Part shown: positions 5,681-64,000 of the stretch, in pieces
Numbering within the stretch: position 1 is the stretch's first letter
Layout of the letters: each line of letters starts with the position of its first letter
From: Orbicella franksi
Lineage: Eukaryota
Direction: 5' to 3'
Assembly (NCBI GenBank): GCA_964199315.1
Contig: OZ116699.1
Span: 13,020,001-13,084,000 of the forward strand
DNA: 64,000 nt
Program-made: the position numbers and the translations under genes
Notes under the pieces: generated by a model
What the model was told of the DNA's origin: nothing
Database searches by the model: none
Seen by the model: the letters and a program-made list of their open reading frames with translations, nothing else

Positions 5681-5683
5681 CAA

Positions 5684-5718
<35 letters not shown>

Positions 5719-5781
5719 TGCATGCAGGCCAGCCAGCCAGTTATCCAGCCAGCAACTCACCAGCCAGCAAGCTAGCCAGCC
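5681..5781. repeat. (CCAG)n microsatellite, degenerating to the right
   Basis: About eight perfect CCAG units followed by interrupted units. Confidence 0.95.
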
Positions 5782-23369: not shown

Positions 23370-26300
23370 GTAACTTGTTCTACCTTCTGTCTAATTCTTC
23401 AAAAATTGGTGTTATATGTTCATTTACAGTTCTACGATTTGAAAAAAGACCAGTACTTAAGCTAATCGATCAACATGCTTCATCTTTCAGGTGGGCGGGT
23501 AATAAAGATAACTCCAAATACTGGAAGTTTGCAAGGAGAGACAAAATTAACAATACATGGTGAAGGTAGGCCACAAATTTCCATAGCTACCAGCCCTCCA
23601 TCTGGGGCCTAAAACTGTGAATCAAAACTGTTCATTTTTACTGTCTCTGATTTCAAGTTTCGAGTTAGCGTACGTTATGAGTGCTGCGAGGTACAGAGCA
23701 GTTTTCAGGTATTTTGTGTACAATAGCACTCAAAGCTAAGAGAGGGTTAACAATGGAAATTATAACCCCCGTGTAGTGTTGGTTTTCGAAAATCCGAACC
23801 GGCCATCTGGTTTCGTCTGTGTAAACGTACCCTGTCTCAATATATCATGAACCAAACCGCCTATTATTGATCCAAAGTGTACACGTTTTTAGAAAATATC
23901 AGTTCCAGGATCTTACTTTAGGCTGCCGAGCGATTTAAAAGAGATTGACTTACACTTCTGACAGGGTCATAACAAAGATAAGAAACCTTATGAGCGGGCT
24001 GAGAATTCCAGCTTTAACTTCTAAACTGAGATTTCAATCTTTCACCAACTCAAAAGAATGGGGTGGTTTTCAAAGTCGTAAGTCACTGACGCGTCATTTT
24101 ACTGCAGAATGCAGGTGAAAAACGTTGGAAAGCTCGAATCATGGATCTGTTTTCACCGGCCGGCACTTGAGCGGAATTCAAATCAGGCTATTTATTGTGT
24201 CAGTGTTGCAGTCAACTCAGTCAGTGAAGCGTAGTGGCAAGAAAGATGATAAACAACATTATCAGTGTTATATAACAAGTTATTGTAGCCATCTTTTGCC
24301 AAATTTGATACTGAACAGGGGCTAAATTCATGCACAAAGCATTGCTTTCTATAACAGATACAGGCTTTTGTAAACGAACAATACTTACGAGACACCTTTA
24401 TCTAAAAGATCTTCATGAATCTGGCCTTAGGATATAAAATTGAACTACCAGAATTTATAAACGGTCACGTTTTACACAGAAAAGACTTGCGCTGAGCTCT
24501 GAATCGCGCCTCGCCCGCGATGTCTTTACGCAAATAAAACCGCGGGAAAAAAATTCCAGTGTTAAACGACAATGTCTGTCTACGCGCGCGTGATGAAGAT
24601 CAACCTTTTTAACAGGAAATCAAAACCATTAATTTGGCTTAATTAAACGGTCACGTTTTTGTGTACCACGTGTAAGACGCCCTTGAATCACGCTTACTCC
24701 ACTCGAACGCCCACGCTCCCTGCGTGTATACACGTAATGAAGTGCCGGAAAGCAAACGTGGCAAATGGCTGGGAAATTTTGATTCCTTGGAAGGGTCTAT
24801 CGATGCATGACTACAAAATTAATTAGCTTACATGGTTTATTGCCTTATGCCTTTTTGTTTTATTAAATTTCATTGTTTTGTCATCTTATGTATTGTACAC
24901 GTGTCGAGCTGGAGGTATAAAGTCCTCTGTCACTTATCACCTAAGATTTCAGCCGTTAATTGTGGCCATGGCAAGGAATTAAGCTAAGCTTTATAGAACT
25001 TGAATTAAGACTGTTTTTACGAGATAAGCTTATGGAAACTTTTCCAAACCACTGATAGTAACATTTTCACTGAAGCTATCTTCTGCCACCAACTTATCAA
25101 AACGGATATGATTACTTGTTGTATTTGAAGGTTTAATTCCTTGTGTATTAACATGTTTCATATAATTAAAAAAGATTATTACAAATTGACATTTTTATTA
25201 GGAACTGAAGAGTTTTTCCAGAAGGGATAATTAACCCCATTAGAGAGAAGTTCATACAACAATAAGATTAATTAAAGGTTTAGAAAAGAGCTTTTGTTGT
25301 CTATGAAGTCTTAATTGTTCTGGAATGGCACTCCAAAGCGTAAACCGATATGAAAACTATAAAACATGTTAAATATTTGCTGAGACTTGCTGCCGAATAG
25401 TAAACCGAACGAAACGTAATAACTTCTCATAAAAACCCCGTCACCATTGTTTGAACTCCAGAGCCGAGACTTCCTTCTCTGACCTACTCTCATACATAAT
25501 AAGCCTTTGACTGGTTTTTCCTGTTTTAGGATTTGCAGAGGACCAGTTTAACGAGTTTCAAAAGGAATTGGGCAATAACGTCACCCTTGTGTCAGTGTCG
25601 CGTGCCTATATCGTACCTTGTGACGTCATAACGTATTACACGACCCAGTATCAAATCGTTTGTCTGACAAGGTTGGTGAACTGTCTAAATGTTGTATCCC
25701 TATAGCAATAAGTATAATGTTTTTGTCTGGAAGAACAAAACTTATAGTTTTACGAGCTTAGAGTTAACTTTTGGTTTCATAGGAACGGTCTTAAAATAAA
25801 GGTTATTATAAACAATTTTCTTTTGTGGTGATTTACTACCGTGATCCAGTAGACGGAATATTTTTAGGAGATAATGTTGTATAATCGCTTTGTCAAGTGA
25901 ACTAGCATAACTTGTAGCTCTGTCTTGATCTCATCAATTGAACCTATTTTTGTCGTTTAAAGACCCTCATTGTCAGGAGAAGACAGTTATAACATAAGAG
26001 TGCTGGTGGATGGGAAGTGGTTGGATAACAGTGATGGAAGAGCGTATTGTGGAGGTGAATGTGTGTTTAAGGTATGGGATTTTTCAAGTTTGGATCACTT
26101 CTTTCAGTTCAAATACTATGAATTGTTTAATGATTATAACACATGAAAGCTAGTCTAAACCAGCTATTCGCTTACCTGCTTACAGTTTGTCAGAAAGCAC
26201 ATCTAAAATATTGAGTAGTTAATTAAATTACAAGATGAAGAAAATGCTATTGAGGCAAAAACCAGTCTTGCTTCTGAGGATCAAATCCTCCTTCTCTAAG

Positions 26301-29300: not shown

Positions 29301-32300
29301 AGTTGTCTGTGATTTTTCTTTCAGGATATATGCTGGTGCGGGTCTTTGTGAGATAAAAGATCCAGAAACGGAACAACTGTAAGCTATGAAGTGTTGTTAT
29401 TCATGAAGTGACTCATTGTGATTTTGACCCATCCAGTAACCTATAAAATACTCAGTTGTTGTACATAACTACATAAATGGTTATTATTTACTAAACGCGA
29501 CATACTTACACAAGAAAAAAGAAATTCAATTAATGCTATAGGATAAATCCACTCCCGGAAATGTATACTCAGATTTGATCGTCTTCGCGACAATCGTACA
29601 ATAAAGGCGGAAAAACTCAAATAGGACATTGAACCAATAGGAAATGGTGCTCAAGAACTCTGTGCGTTTTTTCAGAGCACGTTATACGTACGCCAGTTGT
29701 TGGGCTCAACAAACTTGAAACAATTACTTCCAAAATCATTAATAAACGTTCCTAAAACACGCGTTTTGCCTGTGTTAATTTTTTGTACTTGTGTCAATTT
29801 TCAATTTTTAGGTATGGGATGAAAATTGAAGACAACGTGGCGAAGATTGGTTACATCAAATGTAAGCCTGCATCCACAGTGATCGGTAAGAATTGAAGTT
29901 ATATTTGGAATGTTGTGATGCGTGATTTGAGTTTGATCCTTGAATGAATTGCGCAGTACAACGAACATCCTTAAATGAGTGGCTAAGCATCAAATGTCTT
30001 GAATTTCCTTTCAAATTTTGCCTCTTATTAAACTTTATCGAATTTTAACATCGATTTGCCTTCAACGATACCCTGCGAGTAGAGTCACACGGTACGTCAA
30101 CAATTGAGGGGTCACGCCACTCGTAAACGTTTGCGTTAAAACTTTATATTTCTGAAGTTATTCCGAATAGCCTAACACTGAAAAGCTGTGACTTCTTACC
30201 AGCAGTAAAATTTCATACGACGTCAGAGGATGGGAGAAATTAGTGTGTATCTATTTTCTTTAGGATCCCAGCGAGTGTCATTCCTGGTCTCTGGATATGG
30301 GCGATCTCAGATGTTTAAGGATGTAATTTCAGTTGATTCACAGGACAAGCTTTATCTATTCCAAACTCACGCAGGTATGACGTAATGAGACCATGAATAC
30401 TTCCTTAAGAAGAAGAGCTTGAAAAAAATATCAACAAGAAGACAATTAAACCCTGTGCTTTTCTCACGATTGAAAGAAGTTTTGTGCAACTGCCTGCTGG
30501 GTTTAAGCGAAAGCTTACCGAAGTAACTACGAGAAGTTGCGGACGCAAAAAGACGTTCTTGCGCGTACATTATTTCCGGGCTGTACTGTATGCGAACAAT
30601 TTTCCTTTGGTGATATGCTGATTAAATTTCCTTACAGTTTCGCCTTACTTTTTTTTTTTTTACGTCCTAGTCAATTAAATGGCAAAACGTTTCATTTTTC
30701 AATGAAACTTTTGTTATTTTTAAAATTATCTCCAGCATTTTACTGGGCGAGCGGTTTTGATACCACCAAAGGATATTCCAAAGCGCTCATCAAACCCGAC
30801 AGTAACATTAGCTATCTGATGTTACTGATTTGAAGATAGTATTTATCCTCATGTCTCTCTTTTTATCCGTAGATATTTTAGAAGTCAGTCCTTCTATTGG
30901 TAGCACGGCAGGTGGAACAGTTCTTACCATAAAAGGCAAAGGTTTTGATGAGCGTGCCACCAAGGTTTCAGTTGAAGTAGCAGGTACTACTTGTAAAATG
31001 AACTTTGCCAATTTTGAGCGAGTCTATAGTGCATACCATATACCAGATGGACTACGAGGATTGTTATCTCACCCTAAGATACGAAGATAACTCTGTTATG
31101 TAATGTTAAGACTGTTAATTCATGACTTGATCAAGGTTAATAACTGTCTGGTCATTTATAATCGAGTCAATTTGTTATGTTCAAATGCTATTTTCTCTCT
31201 ACTAGGAGTTCCTTGTGAAATACTATTGATGGAAAATGATGCCATTAAATGCCAAACAATGGAAGCTCCTCCTGCAGATAAATATGATTTTTATTCAGGT
31301 AAGCACGATTCCAGTGAACATAGTTCAATTTACTACTTGTACATGATGTAATTAATAATGGCCAGGGACTGTAATACTGGCAATACTTCCATCAAATGAA
31401 AAGTGATTCAGCTGCTTGAATTTGAATCACTGACACACTCCAATTTGAATGTCTCAGGATCACGTGGTTTATTACGTGAAGTTTGGACTAGCACCAGACC
31501 CTTGTCTGTATCGGCTGTCGGAGGTCTGAAAACGACTGCTGCAGACTACCACTCGGAAGTGTTACCCGAGGCAAGCTCTCCAACCCAGGCCTCGTTTGGT
31601 GAATCAACGTCATTCAGCGATCGCCTCCGAGGCTTCTTCGTTCCTCCTTCGGACAATAACTACACGTTCTACATTCAAGCCGATGATCAGGCCGAGTTGT
31701 ACTTGAGTATGAATGAATCTGCGGCTGGCAAAGTAAGTTACACGTTTGCAAATTAAGGCCGCGGTGTAAGTTATTGTAGTTTACCTTGTGCGTCTTGGGG
31801 TTGATACTGAATTACTATCAACAACGTTCTTTTCTTCCGTTGATCGACTGATTGATCAATGACATGAATTGGAAAAGGTATTGCCAGCTAAGTACAGCAA
31901 GTATCTCATTTACTGAGTGCTCGATAAACGACAATGAAGAGTGCAGATTTAGAGAAATGCACCTTCTTTTAAAATGATTTTTCAGCGTTAAAATGTTTGG
32001 AAACGAATGAACATTAAGCCGAAATTTTCGTTTTTCTTTTTTTTCCAGACGAAAATCGCATCCTGTCTCAAGCCATCAACAAGCTGGTCTGCTTCACCCG
32101 AACAGAAGTCAGCGGTTTTCTTTCTCAAGAAAGGACAGCGTTACTACATCGAGGCTCTGCACGTACAGGATGGCGGGAAAAGTCACGTGATGATTGGAGT
32201 TAAAATGCAGAAAACACGTTACGTGAACTCGCAGACTGGTTCGGCAGTGAACGAAAAACAAGAAATTCTTATTAAATCATTAAAACATCCAGAAGTGCAA

Positions 32301-35300: not shown

Positions 35301-38300
35301 TTGTGGGACTGGGATCGAACTCCTGCAGATAGCAGAAGCCACCGTGGTCAGTGGTAACCCTACATCTGACCAGGCGATATTTAGACCAGTCAACGCGTCA
35401 GAGAGTTGCAATATTGTTGTATCACGTGATCAAGCTTCAACTCCTCCAGTTGGTGGAACGTTCGATATCTTCTTGGAAAATGAGAAAGTTAAAGGTACCT
35501 TCTCGAGCTTACCGTTATAGAGGTATAGAGGGCAGTATATCTAAGATAATTGTGCTTCGACTGGAAAAACAATCCGTTATTCAATGAGTTAGCTACACGA
35601 CAAACATGAACAGTAACGGTGAAAACCACCTTCTAACTTTGCGAAGCGTGTTGCATCTGCTAAGTTAGTTTCAATATGTTTTGTTGATTTTTTATAAAAA
35701 AAAAAGAAAAGATCGCGACAAGATTTCGGTCAACTACAACAGTATGTAAGTGTTCAATAGACGGCACAGTATTGAAACAGTTTATTATTTTTGGTGTAAT
35801 GTAATGTAGTTCTCTAAATTTAAATATTTCTTATTCCTTTTCTAGGTATCCCTGCTAACGTATCTGCAGACGAGTTCAAATCCATTCTCGAAAACAATTT
35901 CAACATCGGTAAGGTCACCGTCAGCCGTGTAGGCACATGCGCGTCCTATAACTGGATAGTGGAATGGGCCACAACAGGAGGAGATCAACCAGCCCTGACA
36001 GTTAATGGAACCGGTTTGACAGGAAACAACGTGTCAATGAAAGCTGTCACAATCGATGATGGAGGAATGTTCCTAAGACCGATACCAGGTGACATGTTGC
36101 GAGTGGCAGAAATCGAGCCACAGGTATGAAACAATTCTATACGAACGGGGCGGTCTTAGATTTATATTAAAACGTTAAGAAAATCCTCAGTTCTCATCTG
36201 GCTAATTACAAAAACACAAAGAGCGTAAGAACCAACCAGGACACAAAGTCAAGATAGCCAACTAGTCGAGAAAGGCACAATATCGGACTCTGATTAGTCA
36301 AACCTAGTTCGACAAATTAACTAACAATGAAACATTTCTTGTAAGTGAATGCTTGGAGCGTTTAGGTTTAGGTTTAAGCGGCAATCTGACGGAAAAGGAA
36401 TTTCTATGGAGCCACAAAATTTTTGCCATCAGGTTTCAAGATTCATGTTAATAACACTAAGATTGCTCCGTTACAAGATATTTGTTACATTCATTTTAGG
36501 TGACAGTCACGCTGAACAATATTCCATCGAGCTGTTCCAAAAGAAAATGTTCCTTCACATTTTCATCCCCGGATACTCCAACCCTCACCTCTATATCACC
36601 ACAAAAAGGAACTGCCGCAACCGAAATTACACTCACCGGAAGTGGCTTCAGCTCCAATATACAGGAAGTAAATGTCACCATTGGTGCAACCACCTGTCAC
36701 GTGACAAGCTCTAATGAAACTATAATTAAGTGTACCGCTGGTCAGTCAATTGGCGGATCGCATGATGTTGTCATGAAAATTGGAAATAAGGGATTTGCAA
36801 AGCCCTCAAGTGGACCAGCCAGTTTTACTTATGAAGTAAGTGTAAGCGGTATCAAACCAGCCAGGGGAGGTATTGGAGGAGGAACGCTTGTTACTATAAC
36901 AGGGAGCGGATTTGGCGTGACACCTAATGATAGCAGTGTGACAATCGGCGACTCCATCTGTGACATAGTTAATGTCACCATGACAGAAATATCGTGTGTC
37001 ACGACATCTCATGACACAAGTAACGCAAGTGTCAATGTCGCGGTCGGCAGTGAAGTTGGATCGATGTTGAACGCGTTCTGGTACGACTCTGGAATGACTC
37101 CGATAGTGTCATCACTGAGTACCTCAGAAGGCAGTGTCAGTGGAGGTGAACAGTTAATGATCCACGGCACAGGATTTGGGTCCCAACAAGGGACGGTAAA
37201 AATAGGTCCTCATCCATGTAAAGTGACTTTGTACTCCGACGTGCTTATAAAATGCACCACTCCTGCTAGTGCTCCTGGGATGTATGACGTGCTAGTCTGT
37301 GTAGAAGGCATTGGGTGTGCTGTAGAAGCCGGCTTACGTTCCAGACCACCACAGTTCAACTACATCTTGTATGTGAGCGGCATCTCTCCTGGGCACGGCT
37401 CTGTGTTTGGAGGAACAGTTCTGACTCTTGTTGGTCGTGGATTCAGTGATAACACTTCAGCAATTGCAGTAAATGTTGGTCATGTTCCCTGCAAAGTCCT
37501 GTCAAGTAGAAGCACAAACATCATGTGCAGGACGGAAGCATCGTCTACGGCTCACAATGTGGACAACACTGGAATCCACCCGAGTAAGACTTTAGACTTT
37601 TAGCTCAAACAATTAGGAAATTATGTGGCCAACGTTTATCATAGCATACATATAAAATGCGAAACGTTAGCGACGAGAGGAAGCTGACTTTCTTTCCCGA
37701 TTTCAGTTTCTTCGCTCGCTTGAGCTTTTGCTTGCTGGTGTCTCAGGATTATACCCTTTGATTCTGCTTCGCGTAATTAGATTTTGTTACCTTAAAGGTT
37801 CTTCGTAGACAGTATTTGAACTGTAATTTTGACATGTGTCTTTTTCCTCAGAGTATGGTATTGGTTACGCCTGGAATCCTCAGACCATTGTGATAAACTC
37901 TGGCGACTCTGTTCAGGTACTACTGTGTAACTGTTTTGAAGTCAATGATGTAGCAGAACTTCTCTTTAAAAGACTAACGAAGTTATGTGTTGCATTGCGA
38001 ACTGGAATGGCTTCTTAATGACTGAAGTAAGCTAAACATGGAGCAAATTAGAGCTGGAAGTAGCGCAACAAAGCAATGGAAACACAGTGTGAACACATCA
38101 ACCCAGTCTAGTCAATCTCAAAACGAATCTCTGCAGCAGCAAATAGGATGATCAACGAACAGGAGTTCTAAGCGCGGCTGGCACATAAGGAACAGCCTAG
38201 CCTGCGTAGCTGGCGGTTTAGTTGGTTAGGTTAGAGGACCGTATAGAGCGGCGTGATGCGCAAAAAACGAGCGGGTAAGCTGAGAGTGGTCTGGGCCCAT

Positions 38301-41300: not shown

Positions 41301-44300
41301 CCAGGCCGGGGTTGTTCACGTATCGAGAGTCTCTTACGTCACGTATTACGTCAGTAAGTCCGTCACGTGGTGGAACAGGAGGTGGAGTACAACTCACCAT
41401 AAAAGGAAATGGTAAGTGAAAACGGCAGCGGCCGTGGACTTAATACAGAAAAGTCCTTCATAGAACCAGTTTTGTAAGTGGTCCTGTTAGCAGACAGCAC
41501 ATCTTGGTCGTTTTTTTTTCCTGCCGTAGTTTCGGATTTCATTTAAATAAATTCGTTTAAGTTCAAGACAAGTGGCTTGGCAACTTTTTATGAAGATCTT
41601 ACCTAAATTCCACAACAATTTGTTCTCTTCTCATCAGGGTTCAGTTCAAACGATGACGACAACAAAGTGACAATCGCTGGAATCCCTTGTAAGATAACTT
41701 CCTTCTCTCAAACCGAAATCCACTGTACAACAGGACCGCGGACAGGCACGATACAAACCAAGGTACGGGTGGAGGTTGGTAACCGAGGTATTGCGACCCA
41801 GGATCTCGCGGACTTCCAGTACATCGATGTGTGGTCGTCGCCGTTCACCTGGAGTTACAAGAGTCCGCCTGGGAAAGGAGACTTCGTTCAGATTCCCAAA
41901 GGACAAACAATTCTTCTTGATATGGATACTCCGGTTTTCTCTATTTTGGTCATTAGTGGGGAGTTAATTTTCGATGAGAAGGACCTCACACTAAATGCTG
42001 AAAAGATTCTCGTTGCTGATGGCGGAAAACTTCAGGTCGGAACCGAAGAAAGGCCATTTCAACACAAAGCTAAGATCGTTCTGCACGGTCACATGCACAA
42101 TAAGCGGTTGCCCATTTTTGGAACTAAAGTTTTAGCGGTCAGGCAAGGGACTTTGGACCTGCATGGTAAAGTTGTGCCGATCACGTGGACAAACTTAGCT
42201 ACGACCGCTTTGCGAGGTTTGTAGGAAAAATAATACATATACGAAAACAGTTCTCTGGTCGGCATATCAATAACAATAAGTGACGTTAGTGATATCATTG
42301 CTATTCATTAGAAAAAGTACTAAAACGCCGCTGAATAAAGGAAATTCTTTATAGTACCGTTGTTAATCTTTAGCAAGAACAAACATAAGAACATTGATCG
42401 CATGATATAGAAATTTGTTTGCGTCAGCTAAACGTTGTTTTCGTTTGAAAGTTTTAATCAGACTTTCGAAGCCACGTAGTTAATAGGAATCATATGATAT
42501 TCTTTTGAAATTTATATGGTTTCCATCCATGTCAAACAGCGCAAAAAGAAAAAACCACGCGGGCGCTGTATATAGCTACTGTTAGTCTTTACAGGAGCAG
42601 ATATCTTGAATTATAACAAGTGACACGCGATTAAATCTCGCAGATTAATTTAATTTTTTATACTGAATTTAATTTATTTTGTACGTAGGTGAAAGCCAGC
42701 TCGTTTTAAAACATGCTGTGACTTGGGAGATTGGTGATCAAGTGGTACTCGCCTCAACAAGTCGAAGTCAAAAGGAAAACGAAGAATTTAACATAACGAG
42801 TGTCTCTAATGATGGTCGAACCATCGGCATCACTCCACCAGTTAAATACCGCCACATTTCTCTTGTTCAAACCATCGCTGGAAGGATTATAGAAACACGC
42901 GCGGAGGTCGGGCTTTTGACTCGAAATGTTGTTGTTGAAGGTTCGGAAAATGACGAATGGACCGAAAGCATCCCGGAATGTCCGGATGGTTTCGACCCTG
43001 GTATTTTTGCAGTTCAAACCTGTTTCCAGGGACGCTATGGTAAGGCAACGGCAAGCGAGCAGTTTGGAAGCCAGATTATGCTCAACCCAAAAATGCCGAG
43101 TGAGGGACTGGTTATTGGTAGACTTTCTTACATCGAGGTGCGCAAAGCGGGACAAGCCTTTGGACTGGGTACGAGTAAATCACTATTTTACTGTACTTCT
43201 CCGATCTAATGCAATGGGCAATCGCTTAAATTTATTTTTTTCAGTTGCATTGAGCTTTAGCGCTGGATATTTGGGAATTGTTTAAGTGGATGTACTTTTT
43301 AACAAGCACTTTTTCTCCCTTATCTCTTCATCAAAACCAAACGCACCCTTATAACTAAATTTTGCAATCCGAAAGATCGATTTGAGAATTTTTGAAAGAG
43401 GTGGGGAATGTTTCTGAAGACAAAGAAGAGCGAAAGAAAACTGGAAGTTTATATCAACTAGTGTTAAGTAATAGTCTCCAAATGACACTGCTTCCGGGAT
43501 TGTTTCAATTTGATGTTCCCCGATTCCTGTGGTTGATTAGGTCATTGTCATCGTTTCTAATCCCTTCCATGGTTCCAGAGGTTGTGGAACCAGCGGACCT
43601 TTTGCTTTTTTGGTTTTTAATGCTTCTCTCTCAGCTCTCATTTCATTAAAGTTTCACTGCAAACCTCCTTAAATTGCACACTGGCCATTGGGAGTCTTAA
43701 GACACATTATCTCGTGTTTCGTTTGTAAATGGCAATAACTCAGTGTGAAGTTGCTACTTTTACATTTGTATGATTGCTGTTTACTTTGCCTATAATCAAA
43801 TCAAGCGTGAAAATAGCCGTGGCAAAGTATTTAAATGATCTGAATTAACTTCACGTTCCAGGTCGCTACCCAATTCATTTTCACCTGAGTGGTAACGTGA
43901 CCGGATCTTACGTCCGCGGCTGCGCAATCCATCACACCTTCAACCGTGCCGTGACAGTACATGGCGTATCGGGGTTACTTGTCGAACACAACGTTGCGAA
44001 CGATGTCATGGGTCACGCATTCTTCATCGAGGATGGAATAGAAACTGGTAACACCATACAGTATAACTTGGGTGTTGCTGTGCGGACATCCAGTACACTT
44101 CTGATAACTGATGTCACGCCAGCGACATTCTGGGTGACAAACCCGAACAACACGAGTAAGTACGGTTCATATACTGATACTGTTGTCATCAATGCAATAT
44201 ATTTCTATGCTTGCGATCGTTCGCTTCCATGTGATTCTCCGGTAAATTCATGTTTTACTTGTTTCCAGTCCGTCACAATGCGGCAGCCGGCGGCAGTCAT

Positions 44301-47300
44301 CATGGATATTGGTACAATTTGCCTACCCACCCGGGGGGTCCCTCGTTCACCACCTCTGTCTGCCCAAGCAATGCACCATTAGGAGAATTTCAGAACAACA
44401 CGGCTCATTCGTTCGGAAGGTAAAATATTCTTTGATGTCATATCACTCATATGTAACATTCATTTTTAACGTTTACCTGGTAAACTGATTTTATTAAACT
44501 GTAACTTCAATCTGTTAGGTATGGCGTGTGGATCTTTAAAGAGTACTTCCCGATGCAAGGAGGAAGTTGTGTTTCGAAAACATCCGCACCCGCCAAGTTC
44601 TACACACTGCTTGCCTACAACAACCTTAAAGGCTTCGAGCTCACAAGCGGTGGAGCTATTCAGACAATTAACTTCACTGTGCTAGACAACAAAGAAGCTG
44701 GTCTTGAGTTTACCAACCTAGTCGCTCCTTGGGGAGAAAATGGACCTTTAGTGAAGGATTCTCTCGTGGTAGGACATAGCGATGTGAGCGGAGGTCCCTC
44801 AACGTGCACTCAAGGAGGGCTTGTAGCACCGCAATCTTCGCGCCTCACCGTCTCTGGGACAACGTTCGTGAACTTTGACGCGCCGTCATGCGCTGCACTT
44901 CGTGGATGCTCATTCTGCCATGCGAGAGAGGGAGGTTTCACTACGAGATTCGAAAAAACACAGCTGATAAACTCGCCAAACAAGGCAGCCTTCAAATGGG
45001 AACACGAGAGCGTCTTTGAAGATCTTGATGGAACTTTAACAGGTTAGCGTGCGATGTTGATTATTAAAGAAAGCTTAAGCTTTGATTAAGTCGACAAAAT
45101 AATAACCTCTTACTAACCGAGCGCGAGGGCCGTACTGTGGAATATTGGCCCAAGGTCGTGACATTACGGACCGAGCGAAGCGGTTGGCTTAATGGTTTAG
45201 CACGCGCCTTCTGTCAGTTGGTATTTTCAATCATGCTATAATTTGTAATAGTTGTTTCGTGTGTTCAGTTGAATGGATGCCTGACGACCAGTTACATGAA
45301 GCTCAAAGTTAAATGCGTGACTATTATGATCATACATCTGCATTTACAACTGTTATGTAGCAACTCTCCAGTGCCTTAGAGAGACTAGACAAGTTATACT
45401 TTTCATTCACAATTTTCATTAGTTTTTTTTCTAAACAGCAGCAATTTATCTTAGATTTAAAAGCAATAGAAAATTTCGCCGCAAGGCCTGGTGTTAACGA
45501 AGCTTTGCTATCACACTTCAGGTTTGTCAGGAGGAGGGAGTGTTGTCCCTTCAAACCCCAATCTTCCTCCAAATCACTGTTCTCAATCTCCCAACGCAAG
45601 TGTAATCCACGTTTCCGGAAGTGTGTGTGACTCGACGGTGCGTTTCCGCCGGATGTCCTGGAACAAAGCGCTCCCAAGTTCCCTGCTTTATCGTGACGCT
45701 CTGTTAACAAATGAACATGGAACAAGCCGAGTTCCCTGGGAATTTATGAGGCTTACTCACAATCAAGGCTGGATGGCGACCGTAATTCTGGGACAAAACT
45801 ATAATTTTAGTTTTGACAACGCTCCTCAGCTCACCAACATTTCATACAGGTATAGTTGCGTAAGAAAACTTCTCGATAGCAGATGTGCCTTGTTCATTAA
45901 TGCGTCGCCTCATAGAAACTGTAACGTAAAAAGCGACTCTATAATACTGGGTCTGTGATCAAGCAGTGGGGTAATGTAGTGGAATCGTTGGGCTGTAAAG
46001 TACATTGTTCAGGGTCGGGTTGTTCAGAAGCCGGTTAACGCTTACCCAGGATTAAAAGTTAACTGAAGTATATTTTTTTCTTGTATACAAATGTTTTTCA
46101 TTGCTTATGTTTTGTGTATTTTGAGATTATTCGAACTCAAAACAGAAGGCCAAACAATACAAACAGAAATCCTCATCGCAAAACAAAATTCTCCCTTATC
46201 CTGGGTTTGCTTAATCGGGCTTTGAGCAACCCAGCACAGTTGTGCAAGTCGTTCCCATGGTAGTTTATCCTTAACTCGTAATGAGATGTTCGTCTTTTTT
46301 GCTCAAAAGGGCCCATATTATGGGAAGATTTTCGACAAGGTAGTATCATTTATTCCTACTTTAACCTGGTTGTGACTCTGTTAAGTTCTGTTATACCTGT
46401 CTGCACCATAGTATAGCAAAGGTCGTTGACAGTCCCTCTCCATCTTACTCTATCCTGCGCAAGTTAAACCAGGTTGTGCCAACTATAGCTGCATTTCGTT
46501 ATCTCAGCCTCCACACTCCTGCGCCATATGTTTCATGCCCAGAGCCGTTCCTGGGATTCTACCTCAGTGCCTGTATTTAAACAGTACACATAAAATTGCC
46601 GTTGTATGACTATAAGAGATCAGCCTTGTTTTCTTCTATGGTTAGCCACAGCTGATGCTCCCCGTTAGTGCTAATACTTGTATTTCTTTTCTCGTGTTTC
46701 TCGTTTTAGTGGGGCACTCTATGAATTTGATGCCGAGGACTTCATCTGGATGACTCACCCCGTGAAACAGGATCCAGATATGATATCTATAACTGGCAAG
46801 TTTGTCAACATGTCCAGCGGTATACCGTCTCCAGACAATGCGTCAAATGGCGACTGGTACTACAACAACTTCACCAAAGCACTGACTTACATCGTATCAG
46901 GAAAGGGAGCAGCGGGACTTGTTGACCGAAATATTAACATGCACGTGAGTATATCGCTTCATCATCAGTCATTGGGCAGGGATAGCGACGTAATGAGAGG
47001 GCTCGCCTCCCCCAGTGTGGCTCGGGTTTAAATCCGGTTCCGTGCCATACGTGGGTTGAGTTTGTTGTTGGTTCTTGCCTTGCTCTGAGGGTATTTCTCC
47101 GTGCTCTCGGGTTTTCTTCCCTCCAAAAAAACCAACACTCCAAATTTCCAATTCGACCAGGATAGAGGACCTGCATGAAAACCAGCCAAGGCTAACGTGG
47201 CTTCCTCTCTAAATATTGTAATGTATTTATTGTTCCTTTCCTATTTTATATAAAGCACTTTGATGATATTTTTTTTGTCGAAAGGTCAGCATAAATGTCC

Positions 47301-50300
47301 TTGGTATGATCCACTGTTGACTTATCTAAGACACTTAACATCTCTAGGTTGTACGTTGCTATTTCAAGAACTGTATCAAACCAATTCCACCCCCACCCCC
47401 TGAGAAACGTCCCTTAGTATTTGCTGTGTGGTCAGACCCGGACGCCTGGTACGGAACAGAGCCTGGATATGGAGGCCACAACAAACAGCTGCCTCAAGAC
47501 GGAGATGACGTCATCATCCAACAGCGTACGTCACACAGAAAACTAGAGTTTTTTACTTATAGTTTTTTGGAAGTGTTTTTTTTTTTTCTTTTTTCTTTTT
47601 TGCAATATGGTTAAAACCAGCGAGAGGTTTGCTAAAATTTTGAAAACTTGAAAATATTGAAATTTGCGAAACCTAAGGACTATAGTATAATAAAAACTTT
47701 GTGCCATTCCATAAAGAAAGTTAAAAGCTGCGTAGGGCTAGAATTAATGGTGGTTTTACGTGAATTCGTACCTATTTATTAAGGTGTCGTTAATGGAATG
47801 CTGTCGCTTTAATTTGTACGTGCGATGATTCGACATGTTGCAATAACGTCCTGTTCGTTTTCTTATTTGAGCAATTGCTTTTGAGTTTGGTTTACTGCTA
47901 AGACAGTTTTCATAATTTAGAAACGATTTACTTTAACAGCGTTCGTGAGACAGGCAAAAAGCGTTTAAAAATAAACTTTATGTAAATTACTATGCATTGT
48001 TTAATTCCTTCATTTATTCTTAGTTAACTTGAGTGGTTAATTAATTACACGTATAAATAAATTAATTATTAATGTTTGTTTGTTTAGACTGGTGGATGGT
48101 AGCGGATACTGAACTCCCTTACATGAGAAAACTCTTCATATACGGCACACTAGAACTAGAACCTTACATGGACTTTGTCCTCAACGTAACGGACATCGTG
48201 ATTGGTCAAGGAGGTAACCTCATCATTGGCTGGGAAGATCAACCAACGACTGGCAATGTATTAATTAGTCTTAACGGAAATATGGACAACCCAGACATTC
48301 CGGTCCAAGGTGGTCCTAATATTGGTTCTAAAGCTATAGGTAAGTATTAGAGTTGCATGTTGATTCTTGTAGCAAATGAAATGACCTTATAGAGTTCTAG
48401 ATCAACTTTTAGTCAAATTCTTTAACTCTTTCCAAACGGCTTAAACACTTAAATTCCAGCGCATTAAATGGATGTTCGACTATAAACAATTGACGATTCC
48501 TCAAAAGCAACTAAATCAAAATAACCTTCTCTTTCCAAGGTGTGTTCGGGAACTTGGAGATCCACGGCCTAAATAGATCAGTGTACTGGACCCGACTTAG
48601 CAAAACCGCTGACCCAGGAAGCAACGTCATCTATTTGCAAGAGGCGGTGGACTGGAAATCAGGGGAGGAAATTGTCATTGCACCGACTTCGTTTGAACCC
48701 TACGACACTGAAATCTACAAGATAGGTACGCTGGCCACTTATTTTGGTGAATGGAAAACATAGTATGAGCCAAAGTGTTGCTTGGTTTTGGTTCTAGATA
48801 GTGGCTGTCGTATATGATCATTTCTCCCCCTTTAGTTTGCGGCTTCTCTAGTTCCCTCATGAAAAGACGTGTGAATTTCGCTTGTCAAACGCGGAATTTC
48901 AATGTCAACCCATGTTTGTTTTCTACCAAGTCGACTTCGAATTGAAGAGGGTAGAGATGGACAGTGTAACAATCCAATAAATAGGAAAGTGTTTTTGAGT
49001 AAAAATTGCATTTCGCCGTGTAATCTCGTTTTCCTTTTCAGTTAACGTCTACCATGATCGCAAAACTCTTGAACTGAATGATACCCTGAAATACAGACAC
49101 ATTGCCGAGTCATACACCACAGGGAACTGGAACTACACATTAGCCGCTGAGGTGGGACTGCTGACCAGGAACATCGTGATCGAGGGCGCTGATGATGCCG
49201 ATCAAGTGCTTGATAAACAGTCGTTTGGAGGTCGCCTCTTGATTGGTTCATTTGAAGGCATGGAGTCAACTAACCGAAGGGTTCGTGTGGAGAATGTTGA
49301 ATTTCGCCATTGTGGACAGGAAGGGTGGCCTGATTACTTTGATCCAAGGTAATAAAAAATATGGCACAGGAATGTAATGGATGTGTTGACTGGAAAGGCG
49401 CGCCTTAATTATGTGCAACGAATAACCGAAAATTTGACTTGTTTTCTTTTAAAGATATTCACTGGCAATCTTGGATGCCGGAAATCTGAAGTCATCTTAC
49501 ATCCGGGGTAATTCATTCCATGACGGATTCAATACTGCTATTGGTGTATTTGGGACAAATGAGTTAACTGTTGTCGATAACGTCATTCACCACACAGTCG
49601 GCTCGTCCGTTAGAGTCTGGGGCAGGAATAACAAAGTTCTCCATAACTTGGCTGTATTGAGCGTTTCACCAGGTATTACAATCATGTGACTGTATTGTTT
49701 GAATCATAATTCTGAGCTGTTTAAGACTGTTCACGATAACGTTGAAGATTGCGAGCGGATTATGAATCGCGTAACAACCCCTCTCCATTTACTTCATGGT
49801 CAGATGTTTCGAAAGTTTTTTTTTTTTCTTAATCAGAAAAGGTCTCTAAAATCGATCGGAACGAGTAATGTACCTGTTATGAAGAGTAGGAGAAGAACGC
49901 AAGAACTTTATGTTCACAAGAGTTTGATTCCAAAGGAGGGCTGTTATCTATTTTTATTAGTCCTAATGGCTTCCTAACATAACTTGTATAGCAACAAATC
50001 CACGGAACCTAAATTCTTGAGCTTCTATTGATCTAAATTCTCAAACTATCGATTATTCTAGTTTTAGGTCGGAGTATGCTTGTCTCTTCAACACCGTGCT
50101 GAACGTCAAATATCAAACGTATATCATATGTAGTAAAGTAACTGATGTGCTATTTTATACAATAGCGACCTACAAAGGGAGATACGAGGTGAATAACAAA
50201 CTCTGGCATGCTTCCTTTGACATCAGCAAGGCATCCAATATTGTTCTTCGAGAAAATGCGGCAGCTGGAAGCGAAAGGGTTGGGTTCCACATCCGGGGTG

Positions 50301-56300: not shown

Positions 56301-59300
56301 ATAAAGAGAGGCAGTTATCATAACTTAGTTTTATCTAATAATTCGGAGATTCGCTTTAACTGTTAAGTCACTGTTATTCTTAGCTGTGATCAACATTAAA
56401 TGTGTCCGTTTTCCGCCTTTGGCAGTCAGGCGATACTTCTCGTGTCAGACTCCGTCGCTTGTCTTGTCGATTATGTTTCGCACTTCAAGGCAAGTCTTCA
56501 TTGTGTACAATTGTAACTTCTTTCTCCCATTGGTTAACTGTATAGGTACATAGAGCCTTTGTGTCCTCTTACGTTAAAAACTTGTGTTTTTAAAAATCCT
56601 CCAGGTGACTGTAATGACACCGTTCTATGTGGTTCTCAACCTATCCTCGAAATCCGAGACACAGCTACGAACACTCTGGTTGGGAATTTAGGCTGGCGCA
56701 ATAGAACCTGGACGATTCGAGCATCCATGGAACAGGGAGCTGGAAACGAGGTACTAATCGGCGAAACTCAATTCCAGATCCCAAGCTCTGGACGCGCGGA
56801 GATTTCAAACCTGAGTTTTTATGACGTTGCGTCAGGCTATCGAATGAAATTTAACGTGACTGTCACTCCGTACTCTCAAGCTTACTCGGGACTCTTTGCC
56901 ATATCAAAAACTTTCGATGTAACACCACGGCAGTTCTATCTGAAGGTTGTCACGCAAGTGGCGAATGCGAATCAGTCAGTGGTATTTGGCACGCAACCTG
57001 TTGTGGAGGTACGCGACTTGGGGACAGGAAGAAAAGCCACGCCCCTGAAGTCTCCTTGGTGGGTGGCCGTGTCACTTTACTCTAATCCGAAGCTGGGACA
57101 GTCATTCCTAAATGGAACATTCAATGTTTCAGTAGTCAACGAGCGAGCTGTGTTTACAGACCTTCTTGTGACATTGTATGGGCTTGGTTATGTGTTGAAG
57201 TTTGAGTCAAGGTACGGCCACAGTGTACTGTCAGCTCCTTTTGAGGTAAGTGACTTTGGCTCAGTTCAAGCACCGTTCAGTCTTCTGCAGCAAGTACATT
57301 TTACAACAATACCTTGCGAACCTAACACAGCCTACTACGCAAGATATTTCTGCAGTACTTTTCCTTGCGTATGCTAGGTTTGTAGTTGTTTGAACGTTTG
57401 AGCGTCGTTGAGGCTTTTGTGCATTAATGGAGTAAACAGAGTATATGTACCAGTCGCCATCTTTTTCCTAGGCTACAGGGGGATTAATAGTTGACATCAT
57501 GTGATTACAGTCGACGTTTATTTCTTGACCATGCTCACCTCAAATTCTTGTATACTTTATTGGTTAGAATGTTGATAAAAGACTCAGTTCTGATAATGAA
57601 ACTTCAAGGCATTATGTTGATTATTTATCTCCCAAAGGCCGATTCGTCCTCGTTTATTCAGTTGTCTAATTAGAAACAACGCAAACACTTTCTTTTGTAC
57701 AGGCTTATTCATCTACTTTGGTGGTGCTACTTCTGCTGTTGTTGTCACTGTTGTATTTGTAATCTAAGTAAATAGGGCTTCAAATGTGCTACTTAGAAAA
57801 CGTCTGTATAGTTTTAAAGTTAGCGTAGTTTGTTTATTGTAACAAGCGTATCCTATTTTTCTCTTTTTTTGTTTAGGTCCATTACGTCAATGACTACTCT
57901 CCAGTCTTCACCAGTCGCAATTACAGTGCTACTATCAACGAAGGTGTAGCGATCGGTTATCAGGTCATCAACATCCATGCCACGGACAATGACACAGGAA
58001 GCCAGGGTGACGTCTTCTATGCACTGAACGGGGGAAACATCGGCAGCAGCTTCAACATCAACAGAACCTCCGGTGCCATCACCACCGCCGGCAAAGTAGA
58101 CCGTGAAACAACCGCTGTATACAGCTTGATTGTAAAAGCTTTCGATGGAGCTGTTGAAGAAAAAGTTCGTTTCACCGAGGAGCACGTTATGGTGTATATT
58201 CTCGACCTTAATGACAATGCTCCAGAGTTTACCAACGATGGCCTCACTTCTTTCGTAAAGGAAACCGCTGACATCAATGACGTCATTCTTCGGGTGGACG
58301 CACTGGACCGTGACGCGGGAGAAAACGCTGTGTTGCGATTTTCAATCATATCCGGGAACAGTGATGGTTATTTTGACATCAACCCTGCTACAGGGGACAT
58401 TTTTGTGAACAGATCGCTTGACCTGGAAGGATCAGCCCTACCTCTTCTAAACTACAGCTTAGGTAAAGTTAGATTTTAAAAATATATCAGAGCAAATTGA
58501 CGTATTTACGAGTCAAGAAATGGCATTACAGTTTCTTTTTGTTAAATGCGCGTCACAGATGAGCAACGTTTGTCATTATCAGCAAAACAATGCATTTAAT
58601 GGGCCAAGTGCTCAAAGATTATTTGCATTAAAAGTTTAATTTCAAATTTAACTCTTTTGGAAGGGAAGTACAATGAATCTTCTAATTTTGATATCCGTTG
58701 TTGTTAGAATTGTAGAAATGCTAAAATAATCGTATAATCTTGCCTAAAATGAAACATTGGATCTTTCTGTGCTTGGCTCTTTATGTCGAGGAACTCCTTG
58801 AAGAAAAGCGAGCCTCAAGTATCCAGAAATTATCATGTGAAAATGTTGAGCAAAAAGGACTCTTGAAGTTGTTATCCTTTGCCGCATTTATTACAAACCT
58901 TGAATTATAAGAATTGTCTCGTATGATTCTATGCCGTGCACATAGCCAGTTATGTTTTGATATATTAAAGGTTAACTTGTTTACCGGGTCAACCCTAGCT
59001 TATCTAATATACCAATGCCAATTGGTCAATTTCAGGTATTAACGTGACCGACCAAGGCTTACCCGCGCTGAGTAACTTCACTGTCGTTACAATAAGCATC
59101 TCGCCCGTCAATGAATTCTCGCCCCAGTTTACTCACAATCAATCGGTCTCGGTTATCGTGAAGGAAAATCAGCATCCTGGAAATGGTCTGGTGTTGTTTG
59201 ACGTCAATGCTGCAGATAAAGATTTTGGAGAGCAAGGTATGTAAACTGGAAGATAGATATCAAGGTTAAAGAGAGATTTTTAATTAGCAATTACTAAACG

Positions 59301-62300: not shown

Positions 62301-64000
62301 ATTCGATAATTAGTGGCAACGAAGACAATAAGTTCGATATCAACCCCAGCACCGGTATCATAACTGTTAAAAACGAGCTCGACTATGAAACTGTCGTGAG
62401 ATACTCTCTTGTGATACGAGTAAGCGACAACGCTCCACCGGCTCAGCGGCTTTCCACTGTTGCCAAGGTAACAGTTCGGTTGACGAACGTGAATGACAGC
62501 GGAGGTGTGGATGTGTTGATAGAGGATGTCCTTAGCAGAATAACGCCGCCAGGGGATCCTGCTGATGTCGCAGGGCTACCAACGAGTAGCCCGATATCTG
62601 TGGTATTGCTGTATGAAAATGGTAAGTTACAGATTGGAACCAGGGGAGAACGGGCTAGGCTTATATAACTATGACAATAGAAACTTTCATTAGAAGTGAA
62701 GAAACAGAAACTATTGCGGAACTTTATCACCAGTTTAAGTGAACAAAAATAACGAATCGATGATTAATTAGATTGCTGAATTTTCCTCTGTTTTCTTCCG
62801 GATGAGAGCCAAGACCTGACGGTTACAACTGACGAATAATTCGGTATTGGAGTGTTAGGGTAACGTTCATTAATACTTTGGAAGTGGCAAGGCTATATGT
62901 GATACCGACTGGATAAACCGATACGGTGTACTTAACTTGAGACTAGGACAGAGAACAAACTTAAATGGAAGCTGATCTATATGTTTGTCAACAGGAAACA
63001 AAGTAAAGCTCTCCTCTGATGACAGCAGACTGACATTTGACGACAAGTCCGAATCACGTGGTCTTTTCACAGTTGTCCAAGCTGACGACAAGAAGATTAT
63101 TAAAGCAAACAGCGCCGGATTGCTGGGTCAAGGTGTCCTCATTGTTCGTGTTCACAACGTTTACAATGTCCGCGTCACAGTAAATGTGGTGGGTTACTCT
63201 TCGCTACAGTTAACAGCTGTTCCTTATCCAGTCATTGAAGGATCGAATGCCACTTTGACGTCGTTGAAGCGTATAGGAAGTCTCCATGGAAACGTCCAGT
63301 TGGCTGCTCTCAAGCTATGCCTCGTTTTGACGGATAAGTCCACCACCGATGTTTCCACGATGACGTCGACATCATTTCGTGTCGTAAGCAATGACGTAGG
63401 AGTTAAAGTTTCCATGGATTCTATTCCTAAGAACGTGCTGTTTATAGACAGGACGAGCACAAGCGGGTACATGAGCTTTCGTGGGCAGTTCTCCGGTAAA
63501 GAGTCGGGGAATCTTGTTCTCGAAGTTTCAACGGAAGTAATAACAGTTAATGAAATCCTTGCCGTGGAAATAATCGGGCTCAGGAATCAAACTCTTTTGG
63601 GTCCAGTGTTGTCCACGCAGGCCCAGGTTCAAGTAGACTTTGTTATGAATGATAGCTCTGTGCTTAGAGTGCAAAATTTCTCCGCAATCTCTGGACTTGT
63701 AGCATTTAAAATCAGTCACGAAAAAGCAGCTTCGGTTGACCGCGTGACGGGGGTTGTTATGCTGCTGTCAGACTATCATGACTTGGTGACCGTGACAGTC
63801 ACTCCGTTTCAGGGTCTTGGAAAACCAAAGCATGTGCAATTGTATTGTAACACAGTCCCACCAGTGGGTGGTGTTGACATTGGACAGGAGTACGGCCCAG
63901 CAGTACCAGCATTAATAGCTAACCAGAGAGTTACCATTCCTTTACGCGTGAATCCTGGCAAATCAAAACTTCTTGCCTTTGATTTGAAGATTTTGTACGA
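23297..64000 (+). CDS. PKHD1L1: Giant fibrocystin-L (PKHD1L1)-like protein extended by cadherin repeats; at least 54 exons, at least 5695 codons, runs off the right end of the window
   Basis: Hand-traced GT-AG exons with compatible phases and no in-frame stop: 23297-23369, 23491-23565, 25530-25671, 25963-26071, 26455-26512, 28704-28791, 29325-29378, 29812-29885, 30264-30374, 30873-30983, 31206-31298, 31458-31732, 32049-32300, 32630-32711, 33041-33328, 33947-34278, 34819-35107, 35195-35494, 35846-36123, 36500-37583, 37852-37916, 38627-39239, 39501-40315, 40736-41411, 41638-42216, 42689-43168, 43862-44155, 44269-44419, 44519-45042, 45522-45849, 46710-46944, 47348-47525, 48088-48339, 48540-48725, 49042-49348, 49455-49672, 50166-50513, 51023-51637, 52218-52376, 52687-52893, 53335-53661, 53770-54013, 54258-54484, 54758-54983, 55134-55522, 55816-56019, 56605-57245, 57877-58462, 59036-59236, 59683-59952, 60484-60871, 61254-61558, 61947-62621, 62995->64000. 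The translation is collinear with vertebrate PKHD1L1 as I recall it, e.g. RAEVGLLTRN, CPDGFDPGIFAVQTC, GRYPIHFHL, FFIEDGIETGNTIQYNL, TPATFWVTNPNN, NPSDCIDMDCD, ESLDADTELRRLSPVA. Confidence 0.93.
23491..31298 (+). CDS. PKHD1L1: Exons 2-11: IPT/TIG domains 1-3
   Basis: TIG starts RVIKITPNTGSLQGETKLTIHGEGF, TPTITSLTPRYEFPGTLLTIRGRMF and DILEVSPSIGSTAGGTVLTIKGKGF, assembled from ten small phase-consistent exons. Confidence 0.85.
28280..28538. repeat. Recent tandem duplication, 132-bp period, in intron 5
   Basis: Copies start at 28280 and 28412 (GGCAGTCTGGCATTGTGCTTAT...GTGGCGGATTGCC) and differ at about 4 positions. Confidence 0.95.
31458..32300 (+). CDS. PKHD1L1: Exons 12-13: PA14 domain
   Basis: RGLLREVW...[30 protein letters not shown]...LKKGQRYYIEALHVQDGG matches the PA14 pattern, including the DD motif. 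Confidence 0.88.
32630..36123 (+). CDS. PKHD1L1: Exons 14-19: PKHD1L1-family region between PA14 and the TIG array
   Basis: HCGRFSLKNP, LCFSYKG, ASTPPVGGTFDI, SRVGTCASYNWIVEW and PIPGDMLR align in order with the equivalent PKHD1L1 segment as recalled. Confidence 0.85.
36500..41820 (+). CDS. PKHD1L1: Exons 20-25 (part): IPT/TIG domains 4-14 with an inserted cupredoxin-like domain
   Basis: Eleven repeats of the pattern P-x-[IVL]-x-x-[ISL]-x-P-x-x-G...T-I-x-G-x-G-F...C-x-V...I-x-C. The cupredoxin-like segment GYAWNPQTIVINSGDSVQW...PGTYFYSS...MKGKVIV lies at 37852-38850. Confidence 0.9.
38198..38358. mobile_element. Short MITE-like element in intron 21 (right end degenerate)
   Basis: TAGCCTGCGTAGCTGGCGGTTTAGTTGG ... 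CCAACTAAACCACCAG inverted match. Confidence 0.55.
41821..46944 (+). CDS. PKHD1L1: First G8 domain plus parallel beta-helix (PbH1) region
   Basis: VWSSPFTW...GELIFDEKDLTLNAEKILVADGGKLQVGTEERPFQHKAKIVLHG (G8), then GQAFGLGRYPIHFHL, GCAIHHTFNRAVTVHG and HNAAAGGSHHGYWY. Confidence 0.92.
46010..46239. mobile_element. MITE in intron 30
   Basis: Imperfect TIRs CAGGGTCGGGTTGTTCAGAAGCCGGTTAA / TTAATCGGGCTTTGAGCAACCCAGCACAG; no clear TSD. Confidence 0.65.
46974..47231 (+). mobile_element. tRNA-derived SINE in intron 31
   Basis: tRNA-like head (GGCAGGGATAGCG...GAGAGGGCTCGCCTCCC...GGGTTTAAATCC B-box), body GTGGGTTGAGTTTGTTGTTGGTTCT...TTCTCC...AAAAACCAACA, and AT-rich tail. Confidence 0.7.
47348..53661 (+). 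CDS. PKHD1L1: Second G8 domain, second PbH1 region and downstream PKHD1L1 ectodomain
   Basis: WSDPDAW...LFIYGTLELE...GGNLIIGWEDQP...GSKAIGVFGNLEIHG; LAAEVGLLTRNIVIEG; ENVEFRHCGQEG; GPMDHGCCFGYAC. Confidence 0.92.
53770..54484 (+). CDS. PKHD1L1: Exons 42-43: polybasic (furin-like) site and Thr/Pro-rich linker
   Basis: NLIQNLASLLNIDESRIRVVEI...SSRRRRRE...IEIGDPP, with RRRRR at 53895-53909, then FTTAPPVTITTTALPTQNPT. Confidence 0.85.
54758..57245 (+). CDS. Exons 44-47: four tandem copies of an Ig-like module (QP...F-x-x-QP...G...F-x-[ND]-L...F-[ED]-V)
   Basis: Repeats start at about 54844 (LIVMQEPQGANETVPFQVQP), 55345 (LYFTLVSHPRDVNETVPFGQQP), 55989 (LELVITQQPGDCNDTVLCGSQP) and 56931 (FYLKVVTQVANANQSVVFGTQP). 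They end PFEVKER, PFDVKER, TFDVTPR and PFE|V. Confidence 0.85.
57877..62497 (+). CDS. Exons 48-53: seven cadherin (EC) repeats
   Basis: Canonical cadherin motifs recur seven times: [IV]-x-E, A-x-D-x-D-x-G, DRE/DYE/DLE, A-x-D-x-G-x-P and D-x-N-D-N-x-P or V-N-E-F-x-P. Confidence 0.93.
62498..64000 (+). CDS. End of exon 53 plus exon 54 (open to window end): beta-rich extracellular region; last ~25 residues cohesin-like
   Basis: 62995-64000 is a 1006-nt stop-free frame after acceptor CAACAG|, phase 1, matching donor AATG|GTAAGT at 62621. It is absent from the ORF track because it runs off the window. It ends ...GGVDIGQEYGPAVPALIANQRVTIPLRVNPGKSKLLAFDLKILY. Confidence 0.85.

Follow-up and report, generated by a model that had tools for sequence, protein, structure and literature searches.

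A single gene of the coral Orbicella franksi very probably encodes, in one polypeptide, a fibrocystin-L-type ectodomain followed by cadherin repeats. The gene lies in the 64,000-nucleotide (nt) stretch analysed here (contig OZ116699.1, positions 13,020,001 to 13,084,000; hereafter the window), which holds most of it, on the + strand from 23297 to beyond 64000. By orthology its product would be a giant type-I membrane protein of ~6,400-6,600 amino acids (aa) in which the cadherin/dockerin block is internal. The predicted order is: a signal peptide; a fibrocystin-L/PKHD1L1-type ectodomain of ~4,400 aa (TIG, PA14, two G8 domains with beta-helices, Ig-like repeats); a run of seven cadherin repeats; a module of coherin-like type with a predicted dockerin-like segment; and, at the C-terminal end, a SEA-like juxtamembrane domain, one transmembrane (TM) helix and a tail of ~400 aa ending in a MYND zinc finger. 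That a single gene runs from a fibrocystin-L ectodomain into cadherins had been proposed in an initial annotation of this DNA, and the proposal is now borne out by collinearity with relatives, RefSeq models, a continuous open reading frame (ORF), junctions lying on single exons and a fibrocystin-type C-terminus; its size estimate of more than 5600 aa is in line with a collinear match to residues ~23-5687 of Nematostella isoform X1.

The fusion point lies between exons 47 and 48 in the count of the initial annotation (Table 1). Exon 47, preceded by tccag at 56605 and with codons from 56607, ends at 57245 with GCT CCT TTT GAG followed by the donor GTAAGTGA; the acceptor TCTTTTTTTGTTTAG then opens exon 48 at 57877 with GTC CAT TAC GTC AAT GAC TAC TCT CCA, that is VHYVNDYSPVF. 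Donor and acceptor are each in phase 0, as the initial annotation had read directly from the sequence (TTT GAG/GTAAGT, then VHYVNDYSP), and read-through past the 57245 donor meets a stop at 57375-57377. Separating the last Ig-like repeat from EC1, the first extracellular cadherin (EC) repeat, the intervening sequence at 57246-57876 is an unremarkable intron of phase 0. Exon 48 closes at 58462 on the first base of a split codon, with GTAAAG next; from exon 47 onward every exon border in the window has GT/AG sites, and the product spliced over this range is 1356 aa long with zero stops. Exons 47 and 48 are 52% and 47% identical to Nematostella residues 4202-4423 and 4419-4614, respectively (isoform X2 numbering); phmmer finds 504 relatives of exon 47 and no match to it among PDB sequences. 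The cadherin-type linker seen earlier at the start of exon 48 is accompanied by a clear Pfam Cadherin match, and the three preceding Ig-like repeats do end F-[ED]-V as stated (PFEV, PFDV, TFDV). The further suggestion of a fourth such motif, F-E-V, with its V supplied by the cadherin exon, did not hold: this is not conserved, Nematostella having A there.

The part upstream of the junction is, on its domain content, a genuine fibrocystin-L-type ectodomain, because the exons there encode a PA14 domain, TIG arrays, a pair of G8 domains and a beta-helix of CEMIP type; of the two beta-helices, one is matched directly by Pfam and the second is placed by collinearity. The family features, TIG arrays, PA14 and two G8 domains with beta-helices, are thus present in the coral gene, which also groups with named fibrocystin-L proteins in the tree described below. 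When the Nematostella fibrocystin-L protein is searched against the window by tblastn, every segment is found in order on the + strand from 23297 to the window end, at 36-79% identity, residues 23-50 of isoform X1 matching 23484-23567 in the first coding exon.

The same fusion is found in relatives. The Nematostella vectensis RefSeq protein 'fibrocystin-L' (isoforms X1/X2/X3, XP_048585400/401/402, with XP_048585400.1 for X1; 6560/6423/6320 aa, differing at the N-terminus only) has a signal peptide, TIG, G8, PA14, beta-helix, at least seven cadherin stretches, a TM helix at ~5997-6020 and a C-terminal zf-MYND, and 'fibrocystin-L-like' of the scyphozoan Rhopilema esculentum (XP_065066283.1, 5864 aa) repeats this domain set and adds Dockerin_1. 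A third protein, P0018 (4686 aa, ENA assembly ERZ20067936), is encoded by one uninterrupted 14,061-nt ORF with TIG, G8, beta-helix and cadherin, and this ORF contains the junction as SFEVHYVNDYMPEF, in the context ...HSVISQSFEVHYVNDYMPEF. Its locus (L001 10001-34061) is split by one 266-nt GTGAGT...TAG intron into two giant exons, the first of 14,061 nt and the second of at least 9.8 kb, the latter encoding further cadherins, a cohesin-like start and paired Ca2+ loops of dockerin-like kind; five relatives, 57-68% identical to P0018, have the same Pfam set. In BLASTP, the 1356-aa coral product gives a single high-scoring segment pair across the junction with Nematostella X1 (4341-5687, 46%), with Rhopilema (4243-4974, 39%) and with P0018 (4162-4651, 35%). 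These homologues were collected with the fibrocystin part, the search having been redone after a first one was dominated by FAT/CDH23-type cadherins.

Gene structure at the junction follows two patterns (Table 1). Some loci share the window's intron position; in L002-L004 the intron is otherwise unalignable. In six others (L009, L010, L011 and the JGI contigs L066, L077 and L089) the intron lies nine codons upstream, and the last Ig-like strand and the cadherin start are on one exon. The two intron positions, at FE/V or nine codons upstream, probably mark two cnidarian paralogue groups. Across six aligned full-length proteins, 32-37% identical to the Nematostella protein, the junction follows F[ED]x.[YF][VK]ND[YFH]xPxF, with F, N, D, P and F invariant. 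Scanning metagenomes for a contiguous junction returned no locus under a strict pattern and 120 under a loose one, nearly all by chance; the three real ones are L066, L077 and L089.

Alternatively, two adjacent genes could meet here, a fibrocystin-L gene ending at or just past 57245 and a cadherin gene whose first exons have been missed, with the phases matching by coincidence. Phase compatibility alone has a chance of about 1 in 3, and vertebrate PKHD1L1 does end near the junction point (PMC6707252), but this reading must contend with the continuous ORF of P0018, with a junction carried on a single exon in L009, L010, L011 and L066, with the conservation of the junction peptide, with a post-cadherin tail of fibrocystin-L type and with an intron (57246-57876) in which, by eye, there is no signal-peptide exon; we therefore regard it as very improbable. 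Even harder to credit is an accident in this coral, be it recent lineage-specific exon shuffling, a decaying pseudogene or an assembly join: nothing beyond the unusual architecture speaks for it, whereas 1356 spliced codons are free of stops, orthologues occur in Anthozoa, Scyphozoa and a non-cnidarian clade, and contigs of five more assemblies or runs have the same two exons side by side.

Several points nevertheless weigh against the single-gene, membrane-anchored protein proposed here. The model rests on the DNA sequence and on relatives; the RefSeq models come from automated prediction, on which neither the continuous ORF nor the single-exon junctions rely; the TM helix and the MYND finger of the coral gene lie beyond the window and are assigned from orthologues; the functional part is inferential; and a cryptic, in-phase, hydrophobic terminal exon sits within the junction intron. 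This last element begins at 57703, where the acceptor ttcttttgtacag is followed by GCT..., and reads AYSSTLVVLLLLLLSLLYL before a stop. The clean path across the intron claimed initially thus stood insofar as no signal-peptide exon is seen there by eye, and gave way at 57703-57762, where an in-phase acceptor, a hydrophobic tail and a stop are present.

The gene might accordingly have two outputs, the long fusion and a short PKHD1L1-like isoform made through the 57703 acceptor, whose 19-residue hydrophobic tail would resemble the TM helix and tiny cytoplasmic end of vertebrate PKHD1L1. The acceptor is a good one, and it precedes the hydrophobic stretch and stop just described; vertebrate PKHD1L1 stops 26-30 residues past the aligned junction point, in keeping with the earlier remark that it ends about here and has no cadherins; and the 77% identical relative L002 has, at a similar place, a T/G-rich stretch that in our own reading can be read as a hydrophobic peptide. 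Yet phase is uninformative, since any AG that follows a phase-0 donor will be in phase; an equal or better candidate turned up in 36 of 500 dinucleotide shuffles of the intron; and the 15.5 kb of the gene's other introns hold two look-alikes, both T-rich and of low complexity. L002 has no comparable acceptor, the L006 intron leaves no room for an additional exon, and the three Nematostella RefSeq isoforms vary at the N-terminus only. The TM-like exon at 57703-57762 barely exceeds chance, and the short isoform is improbable, though less so than either of the readings rejected above.

In the long fusion product, the cadherin part comprises seven tandem ECs, ~109 aa apart, with Ca2+-binding linker motifs as in the cadherin superfamily, and also DRE and DxD motifs; exon 61947-62621 alone has a Pfam Cadherin match of 1.9e-36. 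Between 57877 and 62480 the linkers alternate between the canonical DxNDNxP (LDLNDNAPEF, DDVNDNAPRF, TDVNDNKPVF) and xVNEFxPxF. The linker between the Ig-like repeat and EC1, VHYVNDYSPVF, is of the latter kind and therefore continues the two-EC period; the canonical linkers of Nematostella have the same 218-aa spacing. An AlphaFold2 model of the last Ig-like repeat and EC1-EC2 of Nematostella consists of three consecutive beta-sandwiches (predicted local distance difference test, pLDDT, 76), and Foldseek lays this model over three-EC crystal structures, for example CDH23 EC1-3, along ~340 columns. The modelling is compatible with a continuous rod but no proof of one. In the orthologues the membrane anchor would be the TM helix found in both Nematostella and Rhopilema.

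What follows the cadherins in these orthologues is again of fibrocystin-L type. A SEA-like juxtamembrane domain, the TM helix, a conserved pre-MYND region and the MYND finger make up the last ~540 residues in Nematostella, with an equivalent in Rhopilema, and the C-terminal parts of both align with the C-terminus of a cadherin-less protein of the hemichordate Ptychodera flava, P0278 (E 1e-23; 5e-21 and 6e-13). In echinoderm, amphioxus and protist-like homologues the same SEA-like motif stands directly after the Ig-like repeats. Since both ends of the protein are of fibrocystin-L type, the cadherin block and the ~680-residue post-cadherin module are, by sequence homology, an internal cassette of a fibrocystin-L orthologue. 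The initial annotation had pictured a fibrocystin-L ectodomain mounted on a cadherin stalk; this picture has to be abandoned, the SEA-like, TM and MYND parts behind the cadherins being homologous to the hemichordate C-terminus that has no cadherins before it.

The post-cadherin module, of which the window contains the start, has in the orthologues a dockerin-like segment, after which come the SEA-like domain, the TM helix and the MYND tail; it is on these orthologues that it can be assigned to a dockerin/TMEM132-type membrane-proximal kind. The Nematostella module matches ENA proteins with cadherin, Dockerin_1 and TMEM132 Pfam domains, in several copies (BLASTP 1e-21), and the Nematostella paralogue P0421 (E 2e-30), with no match in ambulacrarian or chordate proteins. 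Dockerin_1 itself scores 8.2e-8 in Rhopilema and 0.039 in Nematostella, and a profile of the module family run against PDB retrieves cellulosomal dockerins, and dockerins only (4fl4_A, 9.9e-5). Pfam Cohesin gave no match in the module at E up to 5. An AlphaFold2 model of the module has a pLDDT of 50.

Other proteins with parts of this layout were met along the way. P0421 (XP_048575327.1, 4770 aa; isoform X1 5166 aa) has no EC repeats; its post-cadherin module is still there, with a weak dockerin match, and so are a TM helix and a weak MYND match. The hemichordate and sea-urchin 'fibrocystin-L-like' proteins P0278, P0280, P0285, P0286, P0303 and P0434 have a conserved region and then a terminal MYND finger, both of which vertebrate PKHD1L1 lacks. 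P0407, a 6368-aa single-ORF protein with TIG, cadherin, REJ and MYND, is another MYND-tailed giant cadherin; it clusters at 90% with RefSeq proteins of the sponge Corticium candelabrum, where RefSeq splits it into two models of 2406 and 4598 aa.

A maximum-likelihood tree of the shared ectodomain (2223 columns, LG+G4, quick search) places the window with the cadherin-bearing Nematostella protein (support 100), inside a clade that also holds deuterostome PKHD1L1. Rhopilema joins the cadherin-less Nematostella paralogue (support 99), a grouping flagged as a meeting of long branches, and the P0018 clade, the cnidarian group and the deuterostome clade stand as a trichotomy above protist-like outgroups. 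The tree suggests two cnidarian paralogue types, and a P0018 clade that would fall outside cnidarians and deuterostomes, on a long branch. Cnidarians and one other lineage have the cassette, and it is missing from deuterostome orthologues, of which ambulacrarians retain the MYND tail and chordates neither. The initial annotation knew of no such architecture in bilaterians, and every bilaterian fibrocystin-L listed here indeed has no cadherins.

A bolder reading, which we put forward as possible but doubtful, is that the ancestral animal fibrocystin-L was the long form, with fibrocystin head, cadherin rod, cohesin/dockerin-type module, SEA-like domain, TM helix and MYND finger, and that bilaterian PKHD1L1 was truncated stepwise, the cassette being lost before the deuterostomes and the MYND tail in chordates. 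The cnidarian polypeptide would then unite the hair-cell PKHD1L1 coat with cadherin links, and might be a surface-link component of hair bundles or ciliary cones. If true, one cnidarian polypeptide joins what in vertebrate hair cells are separate molecules. The evolutionary series seen among the proteins compared here, from cadherin plus MYND, through MYND only, to neither, bears in its own right on the origin of the present form of PKHD1L1, a deafness gene and stereocilia coat protein.

Compared with known systems, the coral gene is closest to the two cnidarian proteins: Nematostella fibrocystin-L, its orthologue or paralogue, shares the junction and the domain order through TM and MYND, and so does Rhopilema fibrocystin-L-like, of the second paralogue type, whose own junction reads PFDVRFKNDYRPVF. 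Vertebrate PKHD1L1 shares the signal peptide, IPT/TIG, PA14, two G8 domains with beta-helices and C-terminal Ig-like repeats; unlike the coral type it has no cadherin, dockerin-like module, SEA-like domain or MYND finger. The mouse protein (4249 aa) has one TM helix, an 8-aa cytoplasmic end and serves as a stereocilia coat protein (PMC6707252). That vertebrate ending, in which the last Ig-like repeats lead at once to one TM helix and a very short tail, is not what the coral gene has: seven ECs and further modules come next. Ambulacrarian fibrocystin-L-like proteins (e.g. Ptychodera flava P0278, 4665 aa) have in common the fibrocystin ectodomain, a homologous SEA-like domain, TM helix, pre-MYND region and MYND finger, and differ in having neither cadherin repeats nor the post-cadherin module.

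On the cadherin side, the comparison is with the coherin family of cadherins, which reportedly goes back to Nichols et al. in 2012. In PMC6030884 and PMC8164589 the family is described from choanoflagellates and sponges. Like the coral-type protein, coherins have cadherin repeats and then a membrane-proximal module, the dockerin-like segment being supported here in the orthologues; their defining cohesin domain is undetected in the coral-type protein, and the same papers describe coherins neither with a fibrocystin ectodomain nor from cnidarians. A further parallel, for which no homology is claimed, is Hedgling of sponges and cnidarians, likewise a non-cadherin ectodomain joined to a cadherin array: its N-terminal domain is a different one, that of Hedgehog, and the protein is ancient and was lost in bilaterians (an account that PMC6030884 gives in part). 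The coral architecture is a variant that combines known kinds, and not a categorically new one.

As to function, we propose tentatively, giving the idea somewhat less than an even chance, that the protein is a surface adhesion or sensory-coat receptor, in which a Ca2+-stiffened cadherin segment holds a carbohydrate-binding-type head off the membrane and whose MYND tail brings in partners from the cytoplasm. Seven ECs, from the length of one EC, measure ~30 nm; a rod of this size, together with the dockerin-bearing module, would keep the fibrocystin head away from the membrane, while the membrane-adjacent SEA-like domain and the MYND finger would deal with partners on the cytoplasmic side. G8/beta-helix domains are usually carbohydrate-binding (PMC6707252). 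A role in ciliary or microvillar surface links may be envisaged by analogy with mouse PKHD1L1.

RefSeq already contains the fused architecture for two cnidarians, in entries whose names cover the fibrocystin half only. That annotation might label just one half had been foreseen, and the RefSeq names 'fibrocystin-L' and 'fibrocystin-L-like' do omit the cadherins. Since the database name hides the cadherin half, cadherin catalogues built on names or on old fragmentary models would miss the protein; the 2007 Nematostella models cover residues 835-3268 and 3616-3976 only and never cross the junction. A description of the chimera was not found in the searchable literature, the published coherin architectures being known to us second-hand only. 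A conserved architecture of this kind ties together two families usually kept apart, fibrocystin-L/PKHD1L1 and coherin-type cadherins, across Cnidaria and at least one other lineage. It also extends dockerin-bearing cadherins to cnidarians, judged against PMC6030884 and PMC8164589, where coherins are described only from choanoflagellates and sponges.

Table 1. Features of the coral gene in the window, and the corresponding junctions at other loci (a slash separates the two sides of the junction)
Feature	Position	Strand	Basis or remark
First coding exon: ATG, signal peptide (MKKPDEGILQAVAVLLLSALALAQG...), start of first TIG	23297..23567	+	ORF list; signal peptide by eye
PA14 exon	31400..31753	+	Pfam PA14 5.5e-6
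Exon with four IPT/TIG domains	36500..37600	+	Pfam TIG 1.4e-58, 4 stretches
Additional TIG exons	38615-41416	+	Pfam
TIG and first G8	41607..42221	+	Pfam G8 2.8e-37
CEMIP-type parallel beta-helix, after G8	43849..44379	+	Pfam CEMIP_beta-hel 6.4e-34
Second G8	48066..48347	+	Pfam G8 1.8e-17
Last fibrocystin-type exon (exon 47)	56605..57245	+	Two Ig-like repeats, end ...YGHSVLSAPFE; from translation
Fibrocystin/cadherin junction intron	57246..57876	+	631 nt, phase 0; GTAAGT donor, polypyrimidine-TAG acceptor
Cryptic candidate terminal exon, probably unused	57703..57762	+	AYSSTLVVLLLLLLSLLYL, then stop; from translation
First cadherin exon (exon 48)	57877..58462	+	Linker VHYVNDYSPVF, EC1, most of EC2; Pfam Cadherin 2e-33
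Five more cadherin exons, completing seven ECs	59036-59236, 59683-59952, 60484-60871, 61254-61558, 61947-62621	+	Splice sites, frames
Start of post-cadherin module, runs off window	62995..64000	+	38% identical to Nematostella residues 5228-5550 (X2 numbering)
Junction in L002-L004 (77% identical)			Window's intron position, same donor and acceptor
Junction in L005, SFE/VNYVNDYSPKF			Window's intron position
Junction in L006, RFQ/VRYVNDYSPQF			Window's intron position; intron only ~70 nt
Junction in L009, NFGHK/VVTAPFNVKFRNDYRPVF	~8107		Single-exon junction
Junction in L010, NHAHQ/YYSVPFNVRYRNDYYPTF	~14104		Single-exon junction
Junction in L011, NYGHE/VSSSVFEVHYVNDYAPEF	~1540		Single-exon junction
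Junction in JGI contigs L066/L077/L089, VHSQPFEVRYVNDYSPVF			Single-exon junction

Around these loci some minor observations were made. Within the 23 kb upstream of the coral gene there is a reverse-transcriptase fragment at 15219-15812 (Pfam RVT_1 3.2e-10), and low-complexity PASQ-type open frames occur at 5594-5993. In L010, where the junction-side intron is 4.7 kb long, endonuclease/reverse-transcriptase ORFs resembling those of long interspersed nuclear elements (1082-3494) lie 5-7 kb upstream of the Ig-like exon. On L001, upstream of P0018, genes for a thymidine kinase, an acylphosphatase and a PP2C are tightly packed.

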